DNA of 64,000 nt from Dimorphilus gyrociliatus (GCA_904063045.1 CAJFCJ010000007.1:2177404-2241403), one strand, 5' to 3'. Counted from the first letter of the stretch, positions 8,080-24,765 are shown. Numbers and translations: made by a program. Notes: generated by a model from the sequence alone, not told the origin.

Positions 8080-9648
8080 TTATTGTTTCTGATAAGCCGA
8101 AGTACTTTCATATAAATGACTTGAGCCGCCGCTACTCTGCCGACTATACGAACCGACTGGCGCGACAATAAAGTTTGCTCCGGGATAGGTTTCAGGCAAT
8201 TTCATTATTCCGAATTTGTTTTCAAATCGTTCCTTTTCTTTCTTTATCATTCTGACTCGAAGAATCGTCAAAATAATAAAAGGTACGAAGAAGGCAATAA
8301 AGCATCCCAAAATTGTTGCTCCCAGGATAGCCTTGCCTTTCCTAGATTCTAAGAAAGACTCTTCTACCCTTATATTATAAATCTTCAATTTACAAGTAGT
8401 AATCGGATAAACCCAGCGTTGATCTTTGCATGTTAAAGGCCAAGTTTCGTCCGAACCGTGACATCCGGTCACGAAACTTCCGTCCGTCTCGCTCCGTATC
8501 CATCCATTTTCTGGAGGTTCATTTGGCTCTGGACAGCCCAATACCGTTATTTCTAATAGAAATCGCATTTCTTTTATCTCGTTTAATCGTATTTCCACTG
8601 AATTGGTTGTCGTCTTTAGAACATGATTCCGTCTCTTATTACTCGAGCATACGGCTCGCTCTTTCTCACTTTAATAGAGCATAATTAAAGAAAGCACTAA
8701 AGTATTGTAATTAGAATACTTGGTAATTATTTTCGCGTATTCAATACACGTATCATCCGGGTTACGTTGTTCAGTGAAGAAATCGTGCAGTGTGATGTTA
8801 AAAGTGTAGCCTTGTGCAGCCCGTATCTTGTAATTATGACAAGTAGCTGAAGAAAAAGAAGACATACTCGCTAAATAACGCGTTTCGTCTAGACCCAACT
8901 GGATAATTGACGAATCGCAATTGGAAAATCTATTAGAGACCCCGCGGCAAACGTAATCCGCCTCGAAGTAAGTTCTGAGCGCTGCATTGCACGGGTTCAA
9001 ATCATCGAAAATCGTTACCGGAAGGAATTCACATCTCTTTAAACGACCTGAACAGTGTCTGTCAGCTAGAAAAGAGATGAAAATTCAGTTTAAAATCTCG
9101 ACTATATATACATTACCGTATTCTAGGAAATATATTAGGCCTATACTTTTATTATATGTATTTAATTTTAACCTCTTTGTATAACGTTTTTTGAGCATCC
9201 TACAGCCCAGTCTTCTGTTTGTTTTATGCAAGAACCAAGTTTCATAATACCATAAAATGCGTGACTCATTACAACAATTTCATTTGTACCGCATTCCGCC
9301 TTAAATGTGTTACCAATGCAATAGTCTTTGAACGCTAAAAATATTACATGCATATTTTAGAGAAAAAGTAAACAATTGCTATTTGTCTCTAATACATCCC
9401 ATTCTCTATACGTATATAGCAATTTCATACTGTAAAATGCAAACTCACGTTTCCATTCTCCCTCCCTTTTGTGACATTTTCAAGCGATAGTTTGCCAATA
9501 GAAATGTCACCGAAAATAGGCGTTGGCAAACAAAAGTACAGTATCCTCTCCCGAAAAACAGTAATAATTTCTACTTACCATAAACAATAATATTCAAGTT
9601 GATTGTAATTATCGTTAATATGAGAAAATTTAAGTTTAAGTAGACCAT
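8080..9648 (-). CDS. Type I membrane receptor paralog A: signal peptide + SUEL/Gal-lectin + CUB-like + sushi-like + TM + Tyr tail; exons 9648-9579, 9334-9173, 9065-8720, 8668-8080
   Basis: Phase-consistent splicing gives MVYLNLNFLILTIITINLNIIVY|AFKDYCIGNTFKAEC...YGIMKLGSC...ADRHCSGR...YFEADYVC (SUEL), YKIRAAQGYTFNITLHDF...TTNSVEIRL (CUB), GCPEPNEPPENGW...LTCKDQRW (sushi), then a TM helix. Confidence 0.82.
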
Positions 9649-10242
9649 TGTTAATTCTTTATTTGATTATCTTGAACTTTTTACTTTCTTTTCAAATAGG
9701 CCTGTTGATCTGTACAAAAGAAAGGTTTGTAACAAAATAAATAAGAAGGAAGGGGAGGGGGGTGAGAGGCGCTGGCAGAAAGATATAAAGCGTGCCGGTG
9801 GGGGGAAGACGGGAATCGAGAGAGAGAGAGAGAGAGAAAGACGAAAAGAAAGAAAGAAAGAGGCAAATATACAAACAAACAAACATACAAACATAATAAA
9901 ATAAAGTAAAATCGAAAGAAAGAGATGGAATAAAGATAATAGGAAAAGAATAGAAATAAAAATGTACATCCCCTATTCATTATTATATAAATTAGTTGAT
10001 AGAAAATCTAAGTGGAACTTACCAGGATTATTTTCGCTTCCTTCTTTTTCCGGTGCTTAATAAGTTTTATTTAGGTATACTTTCATTTATATATGTATAT
10101 ATTTATATATTTAGGCGTTTATGAGAAATAAAAAGTAATAAATAATTCTTGAGGTTTTATAGAACTTCCTGCGCTCTAAAAACACAAGCAATTTGCGCTC
10201 TTCACGTTAAATACAACCGTTTGCATAGAGGAGGAGAATGCA

Positions 10243-10584
10243 ATTGGCGGGGTCGCATATAATTAGGAGGGGAGGGGAGAAGGTGGGGGAATTTTATATT
10301 TCGATATAGAAAATGAGCAATAGATGGCGTACGAACTGCCGTATTTTATTTTATTTTCTGGGAGCATTTAATCAAATAAATTGGCCACTAAAATGCTATC
10401 CAATCATCGGCTATTGATTATTCAAAGCACTGATCAGCGCTTAGTGTAAAAAAAGGGTTTAGAAAAAAAGAGCGTTCACGATATCACCTTTTAAGGATAA
10501 AGTATTTTATTGAAAAATCGTTTTGAACTAAAACACGGATGGTCGATAAACGAACAATTAAATCAATCTGTAGAGAATCATTGG
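10243..10584. promoter_or_regulatory. Candidate bidirectional promoter between receptor paralogs A and B
   Basis: ATTGG/CCAAT at 10243, 10380, 10400 and 10580, plus GGCGGG at 10246. It lies between inferred 5'UTR exons: a minus-strand GTAAGT donor near 10023 and a plus-strand donor near 10798. Confidence 0.4.
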
Positions 10585-11860
10585 CCGGAAAAAATTTTCA
10601 GTTCGATTACCAAGGCCAGGCTTCTCTCTCTCTTTTCTATCTCTCTTTTCTCTTTCTCTCCTTTCCTTAACCCCAGAGCTCTCAACTAATAACGACTGTC
10701 GAGAAAAGGGACGCATGAATATTTCAAGGCATTTGGGATGGGATAGTGTGTTATTTTCGGTCTAAAAGAAAAACAACATCTGGAAAGGAAAAAAAGAGTA
10801 ACGTTATCACCTCAACATTAAACGCTTATACTAACGTAATGCAAACGCATTTAAGTGCAAATGAGGTTTCAGACGCCCGAGAATAACTGTCATTGCTTGA
10901 TTGCCAAAAATTGTTGCTTATCTTTTACCGATCTGACTTGGTTCAATCTACTTACTCGACTGAATGCTCCTTTCCTTCAATAAACTTTTGGATTATTCAT
11001 GTCTTGACGACTTGACATATCCAAATTTTCAATATTTACATGCGTATGTTATGTAGATGCATTTTATATTTAACTAAACTAATTAGCAATATTTATCTAT
11101 TTATTCCACTATATATATATATATATAATATGTACTGTATCTGTTTGGGGGAATGAAAGGAAGAGACGCTACTAAAGCTTAATCGTTAATGCGCTTGAAT
11201 ACTGATATATTTTGCAATAAATATCAAGTTTTGTTTAATTAATTATGGAAAATAGTATAATAGGTTAGTCATGTAACTTTTATTCGTTCATTCATTGCGT
11301 TTTACAACGCTTTGACATTTCTCCTTTAGAGTAACGTCAACTTTTAAAAAACAACTGTCACAATTCACGCATATATAGTGGTGTATATACTGTTAATACA
11401 CAGTAAATCTATTCTGATATATATATATATATATATACCTATCGAACGACAATAAACATTTTTGAATATTCAATATGCAGTAGATATGGGCGACATGCCG
11501 TCCTTATGCGACGGATTAATATAGAAATTAGCCTCCCGCCGACTAAAAACGCGAATGAAAACAAGCCGGAAAGGCATATTAATAGCTTTATTGAACTTGG
11601 AGTGTAGTTTAACCTTAAAAAAAAAGGTATAGAAAAGAAATTATATTACTCTATTGAAAAATCTTGCATTTTAATTAGTAAATAGAGTTGGATGTAAAGA
11701 AAGAAAAAATAAAGAGACGGTAGAAACTTCCCAAGTGCAACCCAACCAAGACTCTCGTACAAACAAAGGTCAGTCGTTCGTTCAACATTTTACCGCCAGA
11801 GTGCACAAAGAACGAAGCAGTAATCGTGTTGCTGTTTTCCAGATTTTTTTGTTATAAGAG

Positions 11861-14800
11861 ATGAAGTTTAGCGGATTAGCCGTTGTCCTTTCATTCTTTA
11901 CAAGTTCCGTGGTCGATAGTGAGAAACTAGGTAAATATGCAAGAGCACGCTTGAAGGGTATTCGTCATACAAAAAATTTCATGCTTACTATAAATCATTC
12001 GTATATATGAGTATTTATATAAATATAACGTATCTGTCTATATACTTTTACGTTTGTAAGCATAAGTATAAATCTAATATAGATATGTATTCTATGTATT
12101 TATGTATACTATATACAGTATATATATAATGTAGATGGTGTGATTGTATTTAATAAATATCATCTATAAATTGTACAACATGCGCATACGTGCCATTCTA
12201 TTATAATTGTAACGGCTTATATGTACACTACATGAATGATATGTGAGCGAGTATAGGACTACTGTGTTTATACGTATACAAGAATCTAACAGTTTATCAC
12301 TGTGTCCGTTAACCTGTGATTTTAAGCGTAAAATTAATATAATTGTTTATGTATAACTATCTTCTGTGTTTATTGAATATGTATAATGATAATTACATAT
12401 ACATAGGGTCTTCGGCGCAAGTATATATTGTATTAGCACTTTTTGTACTACCAAACGACTCCTTTATTGTTCGATTGTACTGAGTTTGTAAGGTGACGTG
12501 TCAGGTGACTATTTACCGTTAGACGCTTGTTCTATTCTATTCCCATCTCGTCTTCCGTCCTGCTCCTTATTGATATATATATTTGGTAGTAAATTATAGG
12601 TTTATTGGCGGTTTTTTATATTTGACCGCTGCCGCACGAGTTTAATTTATAGAATCGATAAATTACCTGCTTTTAGTAGAATAATATACGACCGTTCAAT
12701 ACGACAAACAAATGCCGCGGCGTCGTTTGTAAAACGATTTAAAGAGCCGAAAAAAAGTTTTCTTTTCATCCCTTTTTCGCTTTTTATTTACACTCTATCA
12801 TTTGGCGGTTTATGAAACGGAATAGGAGAAAGAGGCAGAAGAGCAAAGAGAGTAGAATGATAGAAAGACAAAAAAAAAGAAAAAAAGAGGCGGTGAGTTG
12901 GCAAGAAAAAACGCCTTGTATGCGTATAGTACATGCACTATAAGCATATGTATATACAACAGTATGTGTGTATGTGCCTATGTGTGCGTGTATATATGTG
13001 TGTGTGTGTCTGTATATATGAGTATTTATGCATAAATAGACACAAGGATGTAAAATGAATCACGCCTCTTTATACGTGTTATTTTAATAATTTTTGACTA
13101 TTACCCTTTTCTTGAAGATCGCTAAAAGGCCTAATCTAACCGGAAACCTATAAAATAGAATGAGTTACGTCCTCTTATACACTTAACTAATCTGATTACT
13201 ATGCCGCAGGTGAAATCCCAGGTGTAAAATCTGATTACTTCTACACATGTGTCTTGACGCCGTTTCGTGAGAGCAGATCATATAATAATAACTAACGAAC
13301 AAAAGAAAACGCCAATCCACCGCTGTAAAAAACAATAGTTCAAACAGAAAAGCTGCCGCGTTCCACATCGATTAACTATATAGACGCGCGTTTTATGTAT
13401 ATAGAGACGTTTACATGAATTATAACTCCTTCTAACTATTAAAAGATTCCAGGAACGGATAAGTAAAACGATAAAAACAAAAATATAGTAGTAAGTTAAA
13501 AGAAATTAACCTAGATAAAAAAAGGGGACAGCTAAGGACAAAAAAAAACAGCTAGAAGTAGTAGATAGGACATAATGGAAAATTGTTGGACGTGGCAATG
13601 ATTTTTCGATCCGACACTAATTACTATACTCACTCGGTCATTTCGATTTTTTTTTCGTACGTAACTATGCATATAGTTTATATATATATATATATATATT
13701 ATAGACTAAATCGCAGCATTTTCTTTCCCTCTCTCCCACTCCCTCCTTCTCGCTCCTTCCCCATCTCCTTCTCCTCCTTTATTTTCTAATCTTTACATAG
13801 TTTATAATGTTCGATGTGTCCTTTATAATCTGTATTTAGTGCAAAAAAAATTTGATACGACTTACGTGCTTTGTAAAGTATAAACTATTAAACTATGCTC
13901 GATATAGTTGGAACAAAGAACCCTGACTATTGGTGTTAACGAGCTAAACATTTCATGCATATGTACTGTTATGATATTATAGAAGGGGAAAATGTAAATG
14001 CTTTTATCCGTACAATATTGAAGTAACAGGTGTTTACCTTTTAATTCATTTTTGTTTTTTTTTCTCTCTCTCTCTTTATTCAACTCTTCATTTCTTCCCT
14101 AGCCTGCCTGTCTCTTATGGCTATTTTATTATTAGTTTTTTGTTTGCTCTTTGCTATTTTCTTTTTTCTTTCTTTCTTTCTTTTTGTTTTGCTGCGCCAT
14201 TACGTCTTGTCTTGCCAAAGTCCCTGTATCCTTTTAAAATGACTTTTCCCAGATCTCCCAAAATGCGAACTTTGCGTGCGATTAAAAGATGGAAAAAGAG
14301 AAGAGGAAGTTAATTAAGATATTTACTTCTTTCGTGCTTTACTAGTTGCCTTAGAAGAGAAAAAAAATCTAGGAAAAAGTGTCTTGTCTGTGACAGCGTT
14401 TCGCTCTTTTTCTCCTCGTATTGCACTTATATGTCGTCTTCTTATAAATGCGACGGGGCCCCAAATAGCGGAATGACGAGAAAATTGGTACGCGACCTAT
14501 AAAAAGATTGCTGTGGTTAATAAGTGTTAAATGCCAGACGTTGGAAACGTATCTAAAATGAATTCTTTAAGCCGTCTTATGTAGGAAGGAAATGATGTGT
14601 CGTGGCGCGTTAGAGAGATGCAGAGCAGAAACGTGACCGGAGGCCTTAATCAACTGGTGGTAGTAGGGGGTAGTTGAGCCAAAGGGTTGGGAGGAAGGGG
14701 ATACGAGGGCAAGTTTTGATAAAATTTATTTAAAAACCACCAGTCTCCTGTCACTAGCCAAATAAAATATATACAGCGACAAACTAATTACTAATTCACT

Positions 14801-16924
14801 TATCATTATTATTTATTATATTATTCTGTTTATATATATATTTTCTTTTTCTCTCTTTATTTATAAAGAAGAAATTTGTGCACTCGACCAGTCGAGAATC
14901 GAGTGCGGCAACGCAATCATCCTTATCGAACGAGCGCAAATCGGCATAATTCGATCGGGAAAATGCAAAACTGAAAGGCACGACGTTAACTGCATCAGAA
15001 ACATTACGGATAGTCTTCAAAGCCGTTGTTCCGGTAGAAAACATTGCAGAGATCAGATCGATATGACTGAGTTGGTAGGGCGCGGTTTGCCCCGAAATTG
15101 TGTTACGGATCCTAAAATTAAGAGGGAAATGGTGCTAAGTGTTCGCTACCGATGCTTGCCGGTCGAAGCGGATTGCAACTCCTATTTGCCTTATAAGGAT
15201 TTATATTTCGAAAAAGGCGAAAGTAGGACTATTTCTTCCCTCAACTCCAAATGCAAATGGCGTTTACATTCTAGCAGCGATCGTGGTATATTAGTAACCA
15301 TACGAGCTTTTCCCAGAGAAGTTGGAGGAAAGGTTGGCTGTGGTACAGTAAAGGCCGAAGAAGCTGACTGGTTGGTAGAAGCTTGTGAAGAGAAATCTAA
15401 ACTTTTCTTCGATCAACAACTAACGCTCTCCATTTCCGATCCGAATAAACGGGCTTTCATACTTTTTATTAACGGTTTAGTATTACTTTTCTTATGTTTT
15501 CTTACAAAAAAAAACAATTACTTTAGTAGGAAAATAACAATTCATTTGTACTTGTTTTAAAAAAAAAATGTAAATAAAGGGGAAAATAATAAAAGGGGAA
15601 TAAAGGGCTAAAGAAGAGAGAGAGAGAATACGCGCAGACAATATAAGGGAATTAAAAGAAAAACTATTAAAAATGTATATAGGGAAGAGAGAGAGAGAGA
15701 GGGGGGAGCGAGAGGAGAGCGTAATTTACTAACCGCTTGCGCCATCTTTCAGATTCGTGCCCTAAGCCGGTGGCGCCGAAGAACGGGTGGATTATACACG
15801 AGAAGCAGAGACCGGATGTTGTTTGGTACAGATGTAACTCATCCAGCACAATATCTTGGAGAATGGACTGCAAAGACGGTAAATGGATTAATCCGGATGG
15901 TAAAAGGGTCGAATGCCCAAAAAATGAACGTTAGTAATTGCCATCTTTCTAGACTAGCATTGCAGTTTGCTGATTTGCTATGCATACAAATATATATATA
16001 TATAGAAATATATATTCTATGCAATGTACGAATATATATACGGTATATATAATTATATATGGTGTGCCATGGATATTCCCTCGTCCCTTTAAAAATTGAT
16101 TACTTCTAATATTTATTTAGCATAAATACAGTGAAAATTATCTGAAAATTTTGTATTTATAGATTCCGCAGAAGATTTAACGGACGAAGATATTTGGTCA
16201 TATCTACCTCATGGCATTTGGATAGCCATCATACTAGGCTCTGCACTTATCATATCTGTCACCATCTTAACAGTTGGACTAGTCATGCTCAGAAGGTTTT
16301 ATATTTATTTATAACAGCTATTTACATATTCTTTCGCCTTTTTACTCCGATTAATCTTAAGTATGTTATTAACGTTCTTGATCCTCTTATTTTACCTTCA
16401 GACAAAGAGAGAAGGCGGAATTATTGAGGAGACAATTACAAATGAGAGATTTACCGTCCCTCCCTCCACCTGGGCACGTTCACAAAGCCTTAGGTGTTCA
16501 CACCCTATCAAAACATAAACATAGGAGAGAGGATGCTGAAGCAACTCAGCCTCTTTACACACATCCTCCCCAGCAAATGGTACTACGGAAATTACCAACG
16601 CCACCTACAACTAATCAACGTCGGCAGCTGCTCTCCCAATACAATAGAGATAAATCGGCTAACGATAACACCTGCTACTTTGAATTAGAACCAAAACAAG
16701 TGCGAACCTTGCCTCTAAAACATTCAAAGAAAACTGAGGTGGTCAGGGATATACAAGAGGCGGAAGACGTGGATACAGATTACGAGCAATCGACTTGCTC
16801 TTCGCTAGAAATATGCGGTTGTGACAGGGGTCAATGGGGAACTGACTGCTGTATGCAGAGAGACAAAAACTTTGCTTTAGAGAAGCATATGCGATCAGCT
16901 AGGGAAAACAAATACAGTGAATAG
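11861..16924 (+). CDS. Type I membrane receptor paralog B (SUEL-CUB-sushi-TM); exons 11861-11930, 14869-15474, 15753-15929, 16163-16295, 16402-16924
   Basis: Leader MKFSGLAVVLSFFTSSVVDSEKL joins in phase to EEICALDQSRIECGNAIILIERAQIG...LQSRCSGRKHC...VRYRCL. Sushi-like SCPKPVAPKNGW...DCKDGKW, TM LPHGIWIAIILGSALIISVTILTVGLVML, tail with YFELEP. Confidence 0.82.
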
Positions 16925-17212
16925 TGTATAGAATTTATACATATAAACACTGTATGCTTATACATATATACATGTATATACTGTATGTACATATATATAT
17001 ATATATATACTATTAATTACGAACATTTGTAATTATGGATTGACTGATAATTTAGTAATTTTGCATAATGTACTCTATTGTACATAAATAATCATATCAC
17101 GACTCAATTTGCTCATTTTTACGCCTTTCATCATTCATCTATCATATGGTTCATACATTCATATCACTGTTGGATAATTGTAAAAATAATATGCTCTGTA
17201 CAAAAAAAACAA

Positions 17213-17233
17213 ATATATATATATATATGTATA

Positions 17234-17267
<34 letters not shown>
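17213..17267 (+). repeat. Imperfect (TA)n microsatellite
   Basis: Long TA run with few interruptions, in the paralog B/C intergenic region. Confidence 0.9.
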
Positions 17268-17270
<3 letters not shown>

Positions 17271-18568
17271 TATATAGATAAATATGATATATACAGTAGA
17301 TACTGTATATACTGTATATATTTATACTGTATATAGTGAAACATTCCCTCGATATAGATTAAATTCATCGAATCTATTTAAAGCCTTAAATTCGTTAAAT
17401 GCTTACTATATATCTTTGGCTAAGATTATAGAGAGAAGGAAGAAAAGTTTGTCACCTGTAATTAGATTTTTCTATAAACTTTGTTCTATAATTTATTATA
17501 TAATTACTTGTTAATGTTGAAAATTAATGAGATAAAAAGAAACGTTTTTATAAAGGATATGTATTGTTGTAGACCTAAATAATTAAATAGTTGGTAGCTG
17601 TTTTAGAAAATGAAAAAAATGAGTCACTTAAAAAAAGTCCTCTTCCTTTTTCCCTGTTTCTTTTATACTTCTTTCTTTCTTTCTCTCTCTCCCTCTCTCT
17701 CTCTCCCCCCCCTCTCTCTCTCTCTCTTCTTTTCTTTTCTTTTTTTTCCCACTCAGATCGACTCGCCATATTCTTTTTTTGCTCTTGTGCCAAATTGTTG
17801 AATAGGAAAGTCTATTTATTTGTAAATAAATTAAAGGGGAAGTTTGCACGAAAATTCAAGATCAATTAGGTGTTTAAAGACTCATTAGTTTTTTCGGCTT
17901 AATTTCTTTTTGTTAGCAACTGTAATAATCCAATAAAATACTTATTTTTCAAGCTGTTTTTATGTTTATCTGGATAAATTCATTTACAAATATTCACAAT
18001 ATCTATTATTAATAACATTAACAGAATGAACTTGTTGAAAGTATGAATGGCGCTGATTTATAGTGTAATAGTAGGATTACGTAAAAATGTATAGTGTGTA
18101 TGTACAGTAAACTGTCAGCAGTAAATACTATTTAAGATTACGACCTTATTCAATATTAATATAACATTGTACAGGTTAATAAATAACACTGTTTTCTAAA
18201 GCTAAATGAATGAATTTTTGAAATTCTTTGAAAGAAAAGAAGGTTAAAAGATTGAGGCTAATAAACAAGTTTATTGTAATAGGAAATGAAGCAAGGACAT
18301 AGTAGGAGAATTTTGCAGTAGAAGCACGCATGCGCATTGCCCGTCGAATCATTGATCGTTTTCGGTTGTGCTGTGTGCACGAGCTTGTTAGAATTCTGCT
18401 AGCACCGCATAAACTTGGCCTTTCGCACCAACTGCTTACAGCGGATACGATATGCGAAAGTACATTTCTTAACTACTTCCGTTCTTTTTTTCATCTACTT
18501 TTCCGGACATTCCCCTCCTCCCTTCCCACTCCGCAAAAACATTCACAAACGGACGCCATGCTATCATT

Positions 18569-19458
18569 ATGATTCTTCAATGCATCTTCCTGGCAATCTT
18601 CAGCCGAACGTTTGCAACCGATTCATCAATAGAAAAAGGTAAAAATTAGACCATATTCAATCGGTGACCGCCTGATATGTCACGTGTTTTATGTGGATAA
18701 ATCTACCCTGAGAATGAATGGGAATGTGACGGCAAAGACTAAGAATATGAGTAAAAGAAAAAAGGCTACATACAATGAGCAGGGAGAGAGAGAGAGAGAG
18801 AGAGAGAATGGAAGAATAAGAAAAAGGTTGAAAGGGTGGGTATGAAAGATAGAGGAGTAAGAAAAGGACAGAGTAGGATAGAGAGAATATGTCTGTACTA
18901 ACAAAAAGAGGGAGTATGAGTGAAAGAGTGAAAGAAAGAGTAAAGAGAAACGATCTCTTCTGACGACTTATTACTTTATATTGTAGACTATATATATAAG
19001 ATATATAAGAAATTATTGATTTTTTTTACCGGTGCGGGAAAATTTGTTTCCACAGTGTAAATTCTAAAATATACCTTATAAACACATATAAAACTGTCAT
19101 CGAACAAACAAATAATAATTCCCCCCCACCCTTTTTTCCAACCCCCTTCCCCCCTCCCGACAGACTAGGCCATGTCTGCATGCTACAGCAAATTGATTGC
19201 AGTTTTTTCCTCTCTGCATCAATCGAGTAAGCGCGCCCGATTATATATCGGATCGATCCGAATGAACTTTAAGAAAAAGCAACGGTGTTTTCAATTTAAA
19301 TGCCATTAGTTCGGCAAGCTAATTCGAGATTTAAGCTTTTCCATACGTCGATATTCAATACAAGGTCCGATGGGCGATTGTATATGTGTACATACTTATA
19401 TACATACATACACACATGCATACATGCTTTCGTCTATACATATACACTATATATACAG

Positions 19459-19491
<33 letters not shown>

Positions 19492-19689
19492 TCTATACCT
19501 GTTTTTGCAAGCGTATTTGTACCGCCAACAGGCATTAACATACAAAAGAATACATACGAATTTATTTCACAAAAGCATATATAGTAAACTCATTTATATT
19601 TGTTTATCTGTATACACTGTATAAATCTTTATATATGTAGACAAAAAGCTACAGAGTAATATCATAAAAGACTGAAAGAAAGTGAGAAA

Positions 19690-19724
<35 letters not shown>

Positions 19725-22292
19725 AGGGGGAAGGGAAGGGAGGAAAGGAGAAAGAGAGTTATATAATACTATGTAAATAATAATACAGTAGCGTGCTAAA
19801 TAAATTACAGTACCTCTGTCTTTTTTTTTGGGGCAGAAAAAGCTTGCCTTTTGAATTCTAGAACAAGAAAATTATTGTTTTGCTATTCTGAGATTTATAG
19901 AGAGTATAATAGAGGAAAATCTTTATAGACTATTGAGACAATAATTGTCTTATACCGATATTAAGCTTATTAGCAAATTATGGCTTGATAAATTAGACAT
20001 TGACCCTTCTTAGTCATACCATATAATAGCATAATATCTTTTATTACACATAGTTGTTTTTGCTTGTTCTTTTTATACGTGTAATATATACATATGTATA
20101 TGTATATATACTGTATATATACGACTTGAGGTGTATACTGTATATAGTCGATTATGCTATTTATACATATATGGTTCACAAGATTGTTAGTAAATTAAAT
20201 ATAGATAATTCTATTTAAAGTATTCAGTTATATAGTATATATATACATTTTTTTCTTATAAAACAATTTGCTTCTCCTACCGATATACGGCTTATCAGCG
20301 ATTCGATCAAATCGTGCCGATAATACGAGAAAGAACACACCATTACGCCAGATAAACAAACTTTTTCCGGGTGCAATTTTATACGAAATATAAAAAGCTT
20401 ACGAAATTTATAAACTTTAGTCGAATTTAATGTAAATAGTTGTAAAAAAGAGAGAGAGAGAGAGAGAAAAGAGCGAATGAATGAGAAAAAAGAGCTTATC
20501 TCTGTCAAATATAGATAAAATGACATGCATAATTTGTTTGGTGTGCAGTCTTGTATAATAACCATAATTGTATAAGTTACATAGGCATTTATTGTCGACA
20601 TAAAAAAGGCGTTCAATAATCGATTGAGCGTTCATTCAATCTCAGCACGATCGACAAATTGCCATCATAAAAATCATGCCTTTTTTCTTATCGAACAGGC
20701 TTGTTTTGTCAAGCAGAAAAACTAAAAATAGGCTGCCCAAAAGGAACAGTTATCATCGTCGAAAGAGCAAGATATGGAAGATTTCCGCAATACCATGAGA
20801 ATGAAAAATGCATAGGGAAAACTAATGTTCCATGTACCTCTGATGAACGTTATCGTGTTGATATTCTTAAAAAGATAACAGTGACTTGTACGGGTAATCG
20901 AACATGTGAAAACTTTGTTTCCTACTTTACTGAAGATGTTAAAGGTGGAGGACCTTGTGGAGTAGGCTATTCCCATGTTCTCTATGTATGGTGGAGGTGC
21001 GTTCCGGAGAGGAATGAAAGATGCGGTGCGGAGAAGGTTGGACATTTGGAAGTACCCGGTTATTTAGTATTTGGAAAGTCAAGACATCAACGTGACGCGT
21101 GTAAGAAATGGATAATTGAAGCACCAAGCAAGAAGATTAATTTTACTTTATATACTGGATTTGAACCTAAATTCGACCGTGATTCCTGTATTAACTTTAT
21201 GAAATTCTCTGAAGCCCATAGTAAATCTGTTATTAGTAGGAAAGAGGCTGAGCAGGTTCGCCTCTGCCAAAACGACGTCGAAAAGCCAGATAGATACCCC
21301 ATCTGGTCTAATATTTATAAATCCGATTCAAATAGGGTCGAAGTGGAATTAGAAAGAGACAGCAAGTTTATACTACGCTTTACTAGCTATGGCTGTGGTA
21401 AATTGAAAGCACCAGATGGCGTTTGGGTTCAATACGGAGTTGGTGGAGATGACGATTCAGCGCAAGCGGGATGTGACCGTGAGCAAAAAAGTCCCAGATG
21501 GTTTCTCATGTGTTCGAAGGACGGTGAATGGTCAGGTGCAATTGGTAAGTGTGTCGATACGCCAGACACATTGGAAAGTAAACTTCATGATATATTCGAT
21601 TCGCTGCCGGACGGCATTTGGATATCGATTATCCTTGGAGCAGCTATAGTTATATCGGCTATTATACTTACGATCGGCTTAGTTTGCCTTAAGAGGTTAG
21701 TATTGAACATTTTCCTTTAAAATATCCTCTATTGTAGTTAAAGATAAACACAAACGTCTCTAATACCTTCTTCAAACGTAGGCAAAAACTCCAAATGCCA
21801 AATGGAGTGTACGCCGATGGTCAAGTTTATTATGAAGCTGCTCCAAAAGCTGGAGGACAAAATGCTGAGCAGTACAATAGAAGCCAAGGTTCAGGGTCTG
21901 TAGAAAATGAATACAGCTGCGTCCACGATGCCATTCCCCCTGGCTCTACTTACTGCACTCCTCGCGATAGCATAGCACCAAAACAAGGCTACTATGCAAT
22001 GCAACATAGACCCTATTACGGACCACCTCGTAGGGTTTCCACTCATTTCCAACCTGATTATGATTCAACAGCTCCGCAATACTTTGAACTCGACCCGAAT
22101 CTTGTGCAATCGGGAACTACGAGTAGATCTACTTGTCCAGCCTGCCAAACAGGCACTCTTCCAACAAGACCGCGTACGAAACACAGGAGAAATTCTACCG
22201 GTCGAAAATCTGCAAGACCAGCTAGTCCAATACCACCAGAAGCTGTTGGAGACGGAACTGGAGCAGATTTAAATCAATCATCATCGGCTTGA
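18569..22292 (+). CDS. Type I membrane receptor paralog C (SUEL-CUB-sushi-TM); exons 18569-18638, 20699-21695, 21782-22292
   Basis: Leader MILQCIFLAIFSRTFATDSSIEK joins in phase to GLFCQAEKLKIGC...IVERARYGR...CTGNRTC...WWRCV (SUEL), CKKWIIEAPSKKINFTL...YKSDSNRVEVEL (CUB) and GCGKLKAPDGVW...CSKDGEWSG (sushi). TM LPDGIWISIILGAAIVISAIILTIGLVCL, tail YFELDP. Confidence 0.85.
19692..19745 (+). repeat. (GA)n microsatellite followed by G-runs (potential G-quadruplex)
   Basis: AGAGAG... then G11-A-G5-AA-G3-AA-G3. Confidence 0.75.
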
Positions 22293-24765
22293 CTTTCGTT
22301 AAGAGATAATTTCTATTTTTTATATGCATTAAAAAAATTCAACAAAAATAAGAAATTCAAACATTTAGATTTCAATGAAAACAGAAAACTTTCTTTCATA
22401 TAAAATGATTTTTATTCAAGACGGAACAAGCAAAAAGATTAATATATATATATATAACATTGCTGTTTCTTTTTTTTATTAAAAAAAAACAAAATCTTTT
22501 GTACTGAAAAAAAAATAAAACAAATAAATTAATTTTAAATAGACGTATATAGAAGGAAGCTAGGAAGAGAGAGAGAGAGAGAGAAAGAGAGAGAAAGAGA
22601 GAAAAAAAGAAAGAAAGAAAGAATGGGAATAAGAGTGGGAGAGACAGAGACAGAGAGAAAGAAATATGAGAGAGGAGTAAAAAAAATGCAAATTGAGGAA
22701 AAAGTCGTACTAAGGAAATCAATTAATTAAAGATAAACATGTTTTTTAAAGTTAATATTTTGAAAAATGAAAGAAAAAAAAAGGATTCCTAAAGAACTAA
22801 TTATCCTGGAAAATTAAGAGATAAAATTTATCTTTTCTATTAAAGTATGATAAAATACGGGTTTAAGAGAAGCTTAACTCTAAATTCAAAAAGATTGATT
22901 AATTAGGATAAAATGCTATAGACATACGTCTGAAAGAATGTAAACACTACAAGTTTCTGTAGTCAGGAATATATATATATATATATATATACTTTGTTTC
23001 TGATATTTTTCATGTCAAACTCTTGCAAATGGTGCGTATAGAATTGTTTACAGCTGTTACGTATTTAAACTAAAAAAGAAACTGATCATATACAAATATA
23101 AATTATAGTATACTTTCTTTTATTTATATAGATATGGATACGCAAAATATTGTAGGCGTATATACATTTATCCCTATGAACTATATACATTTACATACTA
23201 TATATATATATATATATACGGTATATTGTATATTCATTCATTCAATTCTGTTTTATATAATAATAGTAACACATTGACAATATCTACAAATATGAAAGCT
23301 AGTTGTGGAGGATTAACAGTAAAATAATAATTTTTATTGAACTTGGTGAAAAATTACCTTTCCGCATGAAAGAATAATAAATATACGACTGGGATTAGCT
23401 ACCATAGTAATGAAGAGCAGCCATATAAATGCCTAAAAGAGAAATGTTTTTGACCCTACCAATTCCCAATACCCACCATCTCCCGCCCCCTTTACTCTCC
23501 CGCTTCACCGCTTTCAATTCTCTATACGCTTTCTTTATATCTATATTCTCAATCTCTATCCCACCTACTCCCAGTCTTTTATCCTCTCTTTTCAGACATG
23601 CTCTCCATCAACTACACTTTATAGTTTGTAAATTTTATCATAGTTCTTAACGCCATCTACCGGTTGAATACACTGTATAAAGTTCTTTTTTGGAATTATT
23701 ATTCATTTTAATATGATTTAATTATTGTCTGCCTTATAAACGAAAAAAAAGTATGCTTATCAAGCGTCACCTGAATGACCACATTCAACAAGACTCTATT
23801 GAGAAAGATTTCAAGATAAGCTTGAGAATATTTTATGAGCATTTTGTAAATATTCATATACACGTTCCGAAAGAGTTAGAGTTTCCTGCCAATGCTTTTT
23901 ATTATGATCATCTTATGCCTAATGAGTCCTTTTTAATCATAACTGTAATGAAACTTTTAGGCTTGCCATTGCAAAAGTTCGTAATTACTTATCAATGAAA
24001 TCTTCATTCTTATAGTGAGGCGAATCTAACTTTATATATACAGAATTGTACACATAAAGAGTAAATATGATACTTAACAATTGAAAAGAAGGGTATCAGT
24101 TGTCCTTTTAACCGACTTTGTAAAGGTTATCAAAAGCGAATGTTGTAGTTTGCAATTTGAGTTCTTCTTCTCCCCTTGTCACAATAACAAGAGGAAGAAA
24201 GCGTTTTTGTAAGTTAACAATTCTTTCTTCGAAATTTTCTGCTAAATATTTTTTATTCATTCTTAAAAATATTTTCATTACAAAAGAGCAGGAAACTCCA
24301 TAAATTTTGGATAGATGACAATCAACATAAGATTAGGAGAATGTACAATGATAAGCAAGTAACAATCAAAAGATAACAAACAAAAACAATCCTTTCTTCT
24401 TTGTTTTTTGTTCCAGTTGAATTTATAAATTATTACAAATGTATTGAGCAAATATTTTAACAATAAAGCATTTACAAGTCTTCAATATTGGACTAATTTT
24501 TTGACTTTTTATTCCATCCTTCGAATATTTTTTGGTTGTCAGTTGTATTCATCAACAGGATGACGACATATATCGTAAAGTGATATTGATATTATCCTTT
24601 TTATCTACTTGAAATATTAACGTTGGAAAGTTCATTTTCAGATTAAAATTATTAATTTTTAAAATATTTAGCCCAAATTCGAAAGAGGCCAACACAAAAG
24701 AAGGTTACTAGACATTCTGTCTAATTTATATCGGCTTCTTGCTTTCCTCTCACTTTTTATTTCTC

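Follow-up and report, generated by a model that had tools for sequence, protein, structure and literature searches.

The stretch analysed here, called the window throughout, comprises 64,000 nucleotides from the annelid Dimorphilus gyrociliatus (G000:C7:2177404-2241403) and is part of a 77.9-Mb assembly in 349 contigs. Its DNA is AT-rich and eukaryotic, with short introns. Stop-to-stop open reading frames (ORFs) between positions 8080 and 22292 outline three intact-looking multi-exon genes, gene A on the minus strand and genes B and C on the plus strand. In each of them a single SUEL-type lectin-like domain precedes a single CUB domain and a single sushi (CCP) module; then come a hydrophobic transmembrane stretch of 23–26 residues, basic residues and a disordered, tyrosine-bearing tail of 60–170 amino acids. 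Judged by sequence, A, B and C are new members of an annelid receptor family that has already been recognised and named, and not a new kind of molecule.

The three genes and their domains

An independent profile contains proteins of other annelids only (alignment A6 minus P0001, 41 proteins). Run on the 1114 window ORFs of at least 30 amino acids, it matched the A, B and C exons and no other ORF, in co-linear order and with E-values ranging from 3e-41 for gene C to 5e-6 for the stalk exon of gene B (Table 1). Because this non-circular profile hits only the exons of these genes, the observation of three genes is real. A first-pass annotation of the window had placed three genes here, on these strands and with this order of modules, and the ORFs and the profile both agree with it.

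Every search and the fold were run on single exons; the lectin-like and CUB domains of gene A were analysed as separate exon pieces. In Pfam, the SUEL lectin family PF02140 (cut-off 31.4 bits) is matched below threshold by gene C (26.4 bits, E 9e-6) and by gene B (17.3 bits). It has no match in gene A, in which the lectin-like domain is split by an intron. No CUB or Sushi match was obtained in the window exons of the three genes, even at E 10, and there was no EGF or trypsin match in these exons either. The domain search that had been proposed as a check thus yields a sub-threshold lectin only when Pfam is used, whereas profiles of the family itself and a structural model of gene C do support the folds. 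The profile of the middle domain (A2; 15 rows, paralogs from this genome) gave 33 matches among all PDB sequences, all of them proteins with CUB domains. Cubilin was the best match (1.7e-11) and the second CUB domain of MASP-2 the second best (4.9e-7); PCPE-1, GPR126, C1r, C1s, enteropeptidase, Neto2, TSG-6, spermadhesins and neuropilins were matched as well. Among the relatives, P0032 has a Pfam CUB match above the cut-off (24.4 bits) and P0049 one below it (16.9 bits). The sushi alignment (A3, 11 rows) contains four invariant or near-invariant cysteines and an invariant tryptophan. Its profile retrieved CCP proteins from PDB in 24 of 28 rows with weak scores, namely factor H at 1e-3, DAF, the CCP of MASP-1 and CSMD1.

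An AlphaFold model of the gene C ectodomain was made with a nine-row alignment (A5), the profile of which has nine co-linear rows and 208 positions, with the sushi columns lost. The model has a mean pLDDT of 61.7 and a low-confidence insertion in the CUB domain (residues 156–199). Its best Foldseek matches are the SUL-I lectin, latrophilin lectin domains, MAP-1 and the CUB2-CCP1 pair of C1s. In VIA-align, model residues 1–103 superpose on the RBL lectins of latrophilin, SUL-I and CSL3 with Z 8.1–8.9, and residues 107–231 on CUB domains with Z 6–7.1. The closest solved structure to the N-terminal domain is the lectin domain of latrophilin (ADGRL), with 25–28% identity over about 85 residues. 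This RBL domain is likewise attached to a receptor and binds a protein, teneurin; the olfactomedin, HormR, GAIN and 7TM parts of latrophilin have no counterpart in A, B or C. The best two-domain match is C1s CUB2-CCP1 (4los; Foldseek E 1.4e-3, probability 0.99; VIA Z 6.2), which aligns over model residues 105–284. However, C1r, C1s and the MASPs are built as CUB1-EGF-CUB2-CCP1-CCP2-protease, whereas the proteins described here would be membrane-anchored and have no CUB1-EGF, no second CCP and no serine protease. The acidic residues usual at the calcium site of CUB domains do not seem, as judged by eye, to be conserved. Altogether, the profiles and the model support a reading as a lectin-like, a reduced CUB and a sushi domain, most strongly for the first two and more weakly for the sushi, and the shared architecture proposed by the first-pass annotation is upheld.

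The three genes have a phase-1 intron in common, located two to four codons before the first cysteine of the lectin domain, and frame-keeping GT..AG junctions are available for all remaining introns of A and B. A signal peptide had been assigned to all three genes. For gene C this is correct, as RNA contigs locate its signal-peptide exon 2 kb upstream of exon 2; for A and B there are candidate exons only. The donor search recovers the RNA-proven donor of gene C exon 1, and the candidate peptide of gene B has the same length as the RNA-proven peptide of gene C and a similar end. Another signal exon for gene C, at ATG 20520, was ruled out, since the RNA contigs put exon 1 elsewhere (Table 1). 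As to the remaining gene structure, the lectin, CUB, sushi and transmembrane (TM) segments of gene C lie in one exon, and gene B has three introns there (15475–15752, 15930–16162 and 16296–16401). Because its paralog carries three introns across the same span, gene C has lost them.

Expression was assessed with public contigs mapped to positions 16300–22299, which reveal presence but not absence. Gene C is transcribed and is spliced at two GT..AG joints, 18638/20699 and 21695/21782. The first joint is backed by 100% identical contigs from a true RNA-seq library (run X1, a coral metatranscriptome). Three more runs (X2, X3 and X4) contain transcript-length contigs from a close relative, 1.8–2.5 kb long. 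The contig of this relative differs from exon 2 of gene C at 71 of 997 bases. Over 177 codons, covering the lectin and the early CUB domain, 27 synonymous and 13 non-synonymous changes result in a dN/dS of 0.11, a value based on the 40 differences listed up to position 21231, with the list assumed to be complete over that stretch. Gene C evolves under purifying selection, which is the outcome, for this gene, of the dN/dS check that had been advised.

The public data contain some additional observations. Short RNA-type contigs are found at 17290–18082, between B and C, one of which (17837–17969) comes from the true RNA library; they may belong to a transcript not yet annotated, or mark a 5′ end of gene C that is longer or alternative. 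There are two distinct close relatives. One is P0001, from ERR14224705, in which 32 of 332 residues of gene C exon 2 are different, and the X2, X3 and X4 contigs carry a set of replacements different from that of P0001, which hints at sibling lineages or cryptic species. Lastly, run X1 and runs X5–X8 (coral-aquarium or reef metatranscriptomes) contain sequence 100% identical to gene C, and the worm evidently lives in those coral samples.

Table 1. Exons of genes A, B and C in the window, with the evidence for each.
Feature	Positions	Strand	Evidence
Gene A candidate exon 1: Met and hydrophobic signal-like peptide	9579..9648	-	Prediction; ATG 9648, GTAAGT donor after 9579, phase 1, fits phase-1 acceptor 9335/9334
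Gene A exon 2: SUEL-type lectin-like domain, N-terminal half	9173..9334	-	ORF 9171-9356; annelid profile E 1e-16; acceptor and donor
Gene A exon 3: lectin-like domain, C-terminal half, and N-terminal part of CUB	8720..9065	-	ORF 8674-9084; profile E 2e-19; CUB alignment; frame-keeping GT..AG
Gene A exon 4: end of CUB, sushi (8374-8541), stalk and TM (8263-8373), 60-amino-acid tail with HLYEST, stop	8080..8668	-	ORF 8083-8670; profile E 2e-25; sushi alignment
Gene B candidate exon 1: 23-amino-acid signal-like peptide	11861..11930	+	Prediction; ATG 11861, GTAAAT donor after 11930, phase 1, fits acceptor 14868/14869
Gene B exon 2: lectin-like (14853-15164, ORF frame) and CUB (15165-15476)	14869..15474	+	ORF 14766-15557; Pfam SUEL_Lectin 17.3 bits, E 0.006; profile E 2e-15; paralog alignments; junction
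Gene B exon 3: sushi (CCP) module	15753..15929	+	ORF 15725-15931; profile E 2e-7; sushi alignment; junctions
Gene B exon 4: stalk and TM helix	16163..16295	+	ORF 16135-16311; match to gene C TM, E 2e-7 (own-genome search); profile E 5e-6
Gene B exon 5: disordered tail with YFELE, stop	16402..16924	+	ORF 16382-16921; motif; junction
Gene C exon 1: 5′ untranslated region, ATG 18569, signal peptide	18363..18638	+	RNA joint 18636>20697 (cut +2, GT..AG) in runs X1 (100% identical), X2, X3 and X4
Gene C exon 2: lectin-like (20701-21015), CUB (21016-21393), sushi (21388-21582), stalk and TM (21565-21696)	20699..21695	+	ORF 20671-21717; Pfam SUEL 26.4 bits; AlphaFold/Foldseek/VIA; profile E 3e-41; RNA contigs
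Gene C exon 3: disordered tail with NEYS and YFELD, stop	21782..22292	+	ORF 21738-22289; joint 21693>21780 (cut +2, GT..AG) in X2, X3 and X4

Family members in Dimorphilus and in other annelids

A search with the exon of gene C finds the conserved TM helix at several further loci of the Dimorphilus genome. The family CUB profile marks 16 loci: seven on contig C7, five on C1, two on C3 and one each on C30 and C19. The seven loci on C7 are A, B and C plus four situated 150–290 kb before the window. What had been described as a cluster of three is therefore a part of a set of about 16 loci. The family sushi profile finds 21 loci, some of them beside lectin matches without a family-type CUB, and in the twelve paralogs inspected in detail the order of the modules is the same.

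At five loci (C23:333244-334208, C7:2514107-2515185, C7:3102738-3103584, C27:517303-520178 and C17:504523-506332) a SUEL lectin match lies next to a family-type sushi, with no family-type CUB match. These may be variant architectures of the same superfamily. The genome also contains tandem arrays of near-identical single-domain SUEL-lectin ORFs at two contig starts, G000:C7:405-6241 (minus strand) and G000:C12:1263-9896 (plus strand; L010). Their ORFs are 138 amino acids long and follow a 468-bp period, in at least 20 copies, each with 74.6 bits to PF02140.

Searched exhaustively with the A5 profile, which is made of paralogs from this genome, protein databases gave 4520 matches at E 1e-3, the majority of them generic lectin or CUB proteins. 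In the top 150 of these, 49 show the full layout, with a single lectin, CUB and sushi domain each, a TM helix at about residue 300–350 and a tail. A word-based protein search found one close relative, and a second such search, in which 8000 candidates were scored, gave 12 matches. Of 30 clusters looked up, the organism was named in 15, all of which are annelid. The relatives come from Capitella teleta (ELU10135.1, ELT96203.1), Paralvinella palmiformis, Lamellibrachia satsuma, Helobdella robusta and Arenicola marina. In the ESM Atlas, a Capitella member belongs to a cluster of 106, and every member with a known phylum is annelid; a rotifer cluster with a score of 0.87 is a lead only. On present evidence from these searches, the family seems to be restricted to annelids, and the lophotrochozoan range that was first suggested is too wide. 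As to the count across annelids and molluscs that had been put forward as a check, the 15 named clusters contain annelids only.

Nor is the family nameless, as the first-pass annotation had implied. GenBank names three Arenicola marina proteins, UCK81575.1, UCK81581.1 and UCK81578.1, ‘Gal-binding and CUB domains containing receptor’ 6, 14 and 15, and these are retrieved by the A5 profile at 6e-28, 9e-23 and 1e-24, respectively. Together with the homologs from the other four annelids, they have the same domain order as A, B and C, from the signal peptide to the tail with its tyrosine motifs. Homology is found in both search directions, and the TM pattern and tail motifs are held in common. They also differ. 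The Dimorphilus copies have diverged much further: a quick tree places them on end branches of 3–6.5 changes per column against a median of 1.0, the longest branch being that of gene B (6.4 changes per column). In addition, some relatives keep a glutamate involved in sugar binding that A, B and C do not have. Because the copies of this genome sit on very long, unresolved branches, no claim of one-to-one orthology is possible for A, B and C. The initial statement that they have no one-to-one match among the characterised vertebrate or fly receptors holds.

Conserved and lost residues in the membrane helix, tail and lectin domain

In the TM helix, 18 of 26 residues are identical between B and C, compared to an ectodomain identity of about 20–25%. 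These helices had been called nearly identical; the quoted strings are indeed present and conserved, but the identity amounts to those 18 residues only. A comparison of gene C with P0001 bears out the accompanying claim of diverged ectodomains and a conserved TM helix: 10 residues differ in the lectin (9.6%), 18 in the CUB (14.2%) and 4 in the sushi domain (7.0%), while none of the 44 residues of stalk and TM helix does. The TM consensus, with small residues (Gly, Ala or Ser) about seven apart on one face, recurs across species, a pattern from which we infer a helix-packing face.

The tails cannot be aligned apart from short motifs that are shared across species. Of 49 tails, 16 carry a motif of the YFELD type, Y[FYH][EVDT]L[DEN], compared to 0.075 expected from shuffles. 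A second one, of the HIYESP type ([HP][IVLM]YE[ST][PHT]), occurs in 15 of 49, with 0.005 expected. Gene B has YFELE and gene C has YFELD and NEYS; gene A has HLYEST, a variant of the HIYESP type, and is without YFEL. In B, C and many relatives, an Asp often stands three to five residues upstream of YFEL[DE], and the motif-bearing tail lies at the C-terminus of a type I protein. The tails examined show no NPxY. In general, YxxP and YxxL are classical docking sites for SH2 domains, and YxxPhi is also a sorting signal recognised by AP-2.

For the lectin-like domain, the reference is the RBL domain of latrophilin-1 (Lat-1), in which a Glu at position +1 after the first Cys and a Lys in loop 2 are needed for binding of rhamnose or galactose, as the substitutions E42Q, E42D and K120R abolish it (PMC2430599). 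When aligned to Lat-1, gene C has Gln for the Glu, keeps the Tyr of the YGR motif and has Ser for the loop-2 Lys. Gene A has Ile at +1, keeps the YGR Tyr and, as judged by eye, has Arg at the position of the Lys. Gene B has Ala at +1 and Ile in place of the YGR Tyr, and has lost both the Tyr and the Arg of YGR. Family-wide, the sugar-site Glu is kept in 14 of 42 members and the Lys in 11 of 42; some annelid relatives (P0035, P0075 and P0124) keep both. Because the required Glu is replaced, canonical sugar binding is doubtful in A, B and C and, going by these positions, probably absent. By analogy to EVA-1 and latrophilin, their lectin-like domain may be used for proteins.

Proposed function and competing explanations

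The reading put forward here takes A, B and C as intact paralogs within an annelid multigene family of type I receptors, which would recognise a ligand outside the cell and produce an output through tyrosine motifs inside it. As a whole, it is given a rough probability of 0.6. The fast-evolving ectodomain would bind an extracellular ligand. Since the sugar-binding Glu is replaced, this ligand would in the case of A, B and C more likely be a protein, or otherwise non-canonical, than rhamnose or galactose. The conserved face of the TM helix would pack helix to helix, either in self-association or with a partner. The tail motifs would be read inside the cell, as phosphotyrosine by SH2-type adaptors and/or as YxxPhi sorting signals.

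By analogy, such a design would be that of a scaffold-type recognition receptor, like DCBLD1/2 or CDCP1, and not that of an enzyme or a channel. DCBLD1/2, CDCP1, SEZ6 and NETO are similar to A, B and C in having a CUB ectodomain, a single TM helix and tyrosine motifs in a disordered tail. They are also neighbours of a Capitella member in language-model comparisons, with scores of 0.79–0.86 that are leads only. The likeness is one of design and not of membership, as A, B and C have no LCCL, discoidin, LDLa or repeated CUB-sushi parts and no detectable homology to these proteins outside the CUB fold. In DCBLD, YxxP sites recruit CRK/CRKL. CSMD and SEZ6 are composed of repeated CUB-sushi units, and the SEZ6 tail has an NPxY; the genes described here, in contrast, have one CUB and one sushi each.

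A more specific version of this function is far more tentative. The tail of hemITAM-type lectin-like receptors carries one YxxL behind acidic residues, and these receptors signal as dimers via Syk-type kinases. The family might, as a long shot, be an annelid-specific analogue of such hemITAM or scaffold receptors. TM-held dimers would then respond to ligand binding by the fast-evolving ectodomain with phosphorylation of a single acid-preceded YFELD motif and of a YESP-type motif, recruiting a tandem-SH2 kinase of the Syk/Shark type together with adaptors of the Crk/Nck/Vav type.

Several points weigh against the receptor reading. That sugar binding is lost is an extrapolation from mutants of another RBL domain, and YFEL also fits a plain endocytic YxxPhi signal, for which phosphorylation is not needed. 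The motif expressions were written after viewing the tails, so the shuffle control overstates their significance somewhat, although the gap is still large. At the level of the genes, expression was seen for gene C only, and the tail exon of gene B has no contigs in four runs, which cannot prove absence. A signal peptide is established for C alone, whereas A and B have predicted signal exons. On the structural side, the support for the sushi domain by sequence is weak (E about 1e-3) and the gene C model is of middling confidence. Finally, no report on the function of the family was found in the literature searched, although published functional data may exist for the Arenicola receptors.

The double meaning of the YFEL motif leads to one of the other explanations, in which the proteins are endocytic or scavenger receptors for uptake. 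YFEL[DE] would then be an unphosphorylated YxxPhi signal for AP-2, and the receptors would cycle cargo instead of signalling. YFEL does fit YxxPhi and is the best conserved motif of the tails (16/49). CUB domains are typical of cargo receptors, among them cubilin, which the CUB profile matches best among the PDB sequences. Against this, the HIYESP-type motif (YxxP), which is conserved as well, is no sorting signal and looks like a docking site for SH2 domains, gene A is entirely without YFEL, and AP-2 does not require the invariant acidic residue and Pro that follow YFEL. Uptake is held to be an unlikely explanation, if one to be taken seriously. Somewhat more doubtful is the idea of immune pattern-recognition receptors that read glycans, in which SUEL domains bind microbial rhamnose or galactose and expansion of the family diversifies recognition. 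A, B and C are all without the +1 Glu and C is also without the loop-2 Lys, changes of the kind that abolish binding in the Lat-1 RBL domain (PMC2430599). Over the lectin and early CUB domain, selection on gene C is purifying and not diversifying. This has to be set against the retention of both Glu and Lys in the annelid members P0035, P0075 and P0124, and against the multigenic, locally duplicated nature of the family, with its very long branches in this genome. Most of the few expanded families in the Dimorphilus genome were found to be locally duplicated immune-related genes (PMC7854359).

Long branches could also be a sign of decay, and one or more of A, B and C might be pseudogenes in a family that evolves by birth and death. 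Gene B would be the first suspect, as it is on the longest branch, has lost the Tyr and Arg of YGR and lacks contigs for its tail exon. The last argument is limited by the nature of contigs, which show presence but not absence, and gene B retains the TM pattern and YFELE. Moreover, the exons of A and B are all open, with frame-keeping GT..AG junctions and conserved Cys and Trp patterns, and gene C is expressed and constrained, so decay is considered improbable. The first-pass annotation had pointed to EVA-1/EVA1C (C21orf63), by analogy with which the proteins would be guidance co-receptors for Slit or Netrin. EVA-1 does have a single-pass layout and a receptor-attached SUEL/RBL domain in which the sugar-binding residues are substituted, as in A, B and C (PMC2430599), and EVA1C is a weak structural neighbour of the Capitella relative P0059 in the ESM Atlas (TM 0.24–0.27). 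The features that are particular to EVA-1, namely two lectin domains and a FAM176 region in the absence of CUB and sushi, are nevertheless found in none of the three genes: they have one lectin domain plus CUB and sushi, and no exon gives a FAM176 (PF14851) match in Pfam, even at E 10. About 16 fast-evolving paralogs are also unlike a conserved guidance co-receptor. The analogy is thus not retained, and a role of this kind is very improbable.

Cell-surface recognition in annelids is poorly known, and three unannotated-looking genes are now tied to an annelid protein family that counts dozens of members at least. Three features that were not found in the literature searched lend themselves to testing: the two tyrosine motifs of the tail, the packing face of the TM helix and the loss of sugar-binding residues in the paralogs. 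They point towards a receptor that recognises a ligand and has phosphotyrosine or sorting output. With its small genome and about 16 copies, Dimorphilus offers a compact system for testing this family. If the hemITAM-like reading were true, it would represent a previously undescribed phosphotyrosine recognition pathway in annelids.

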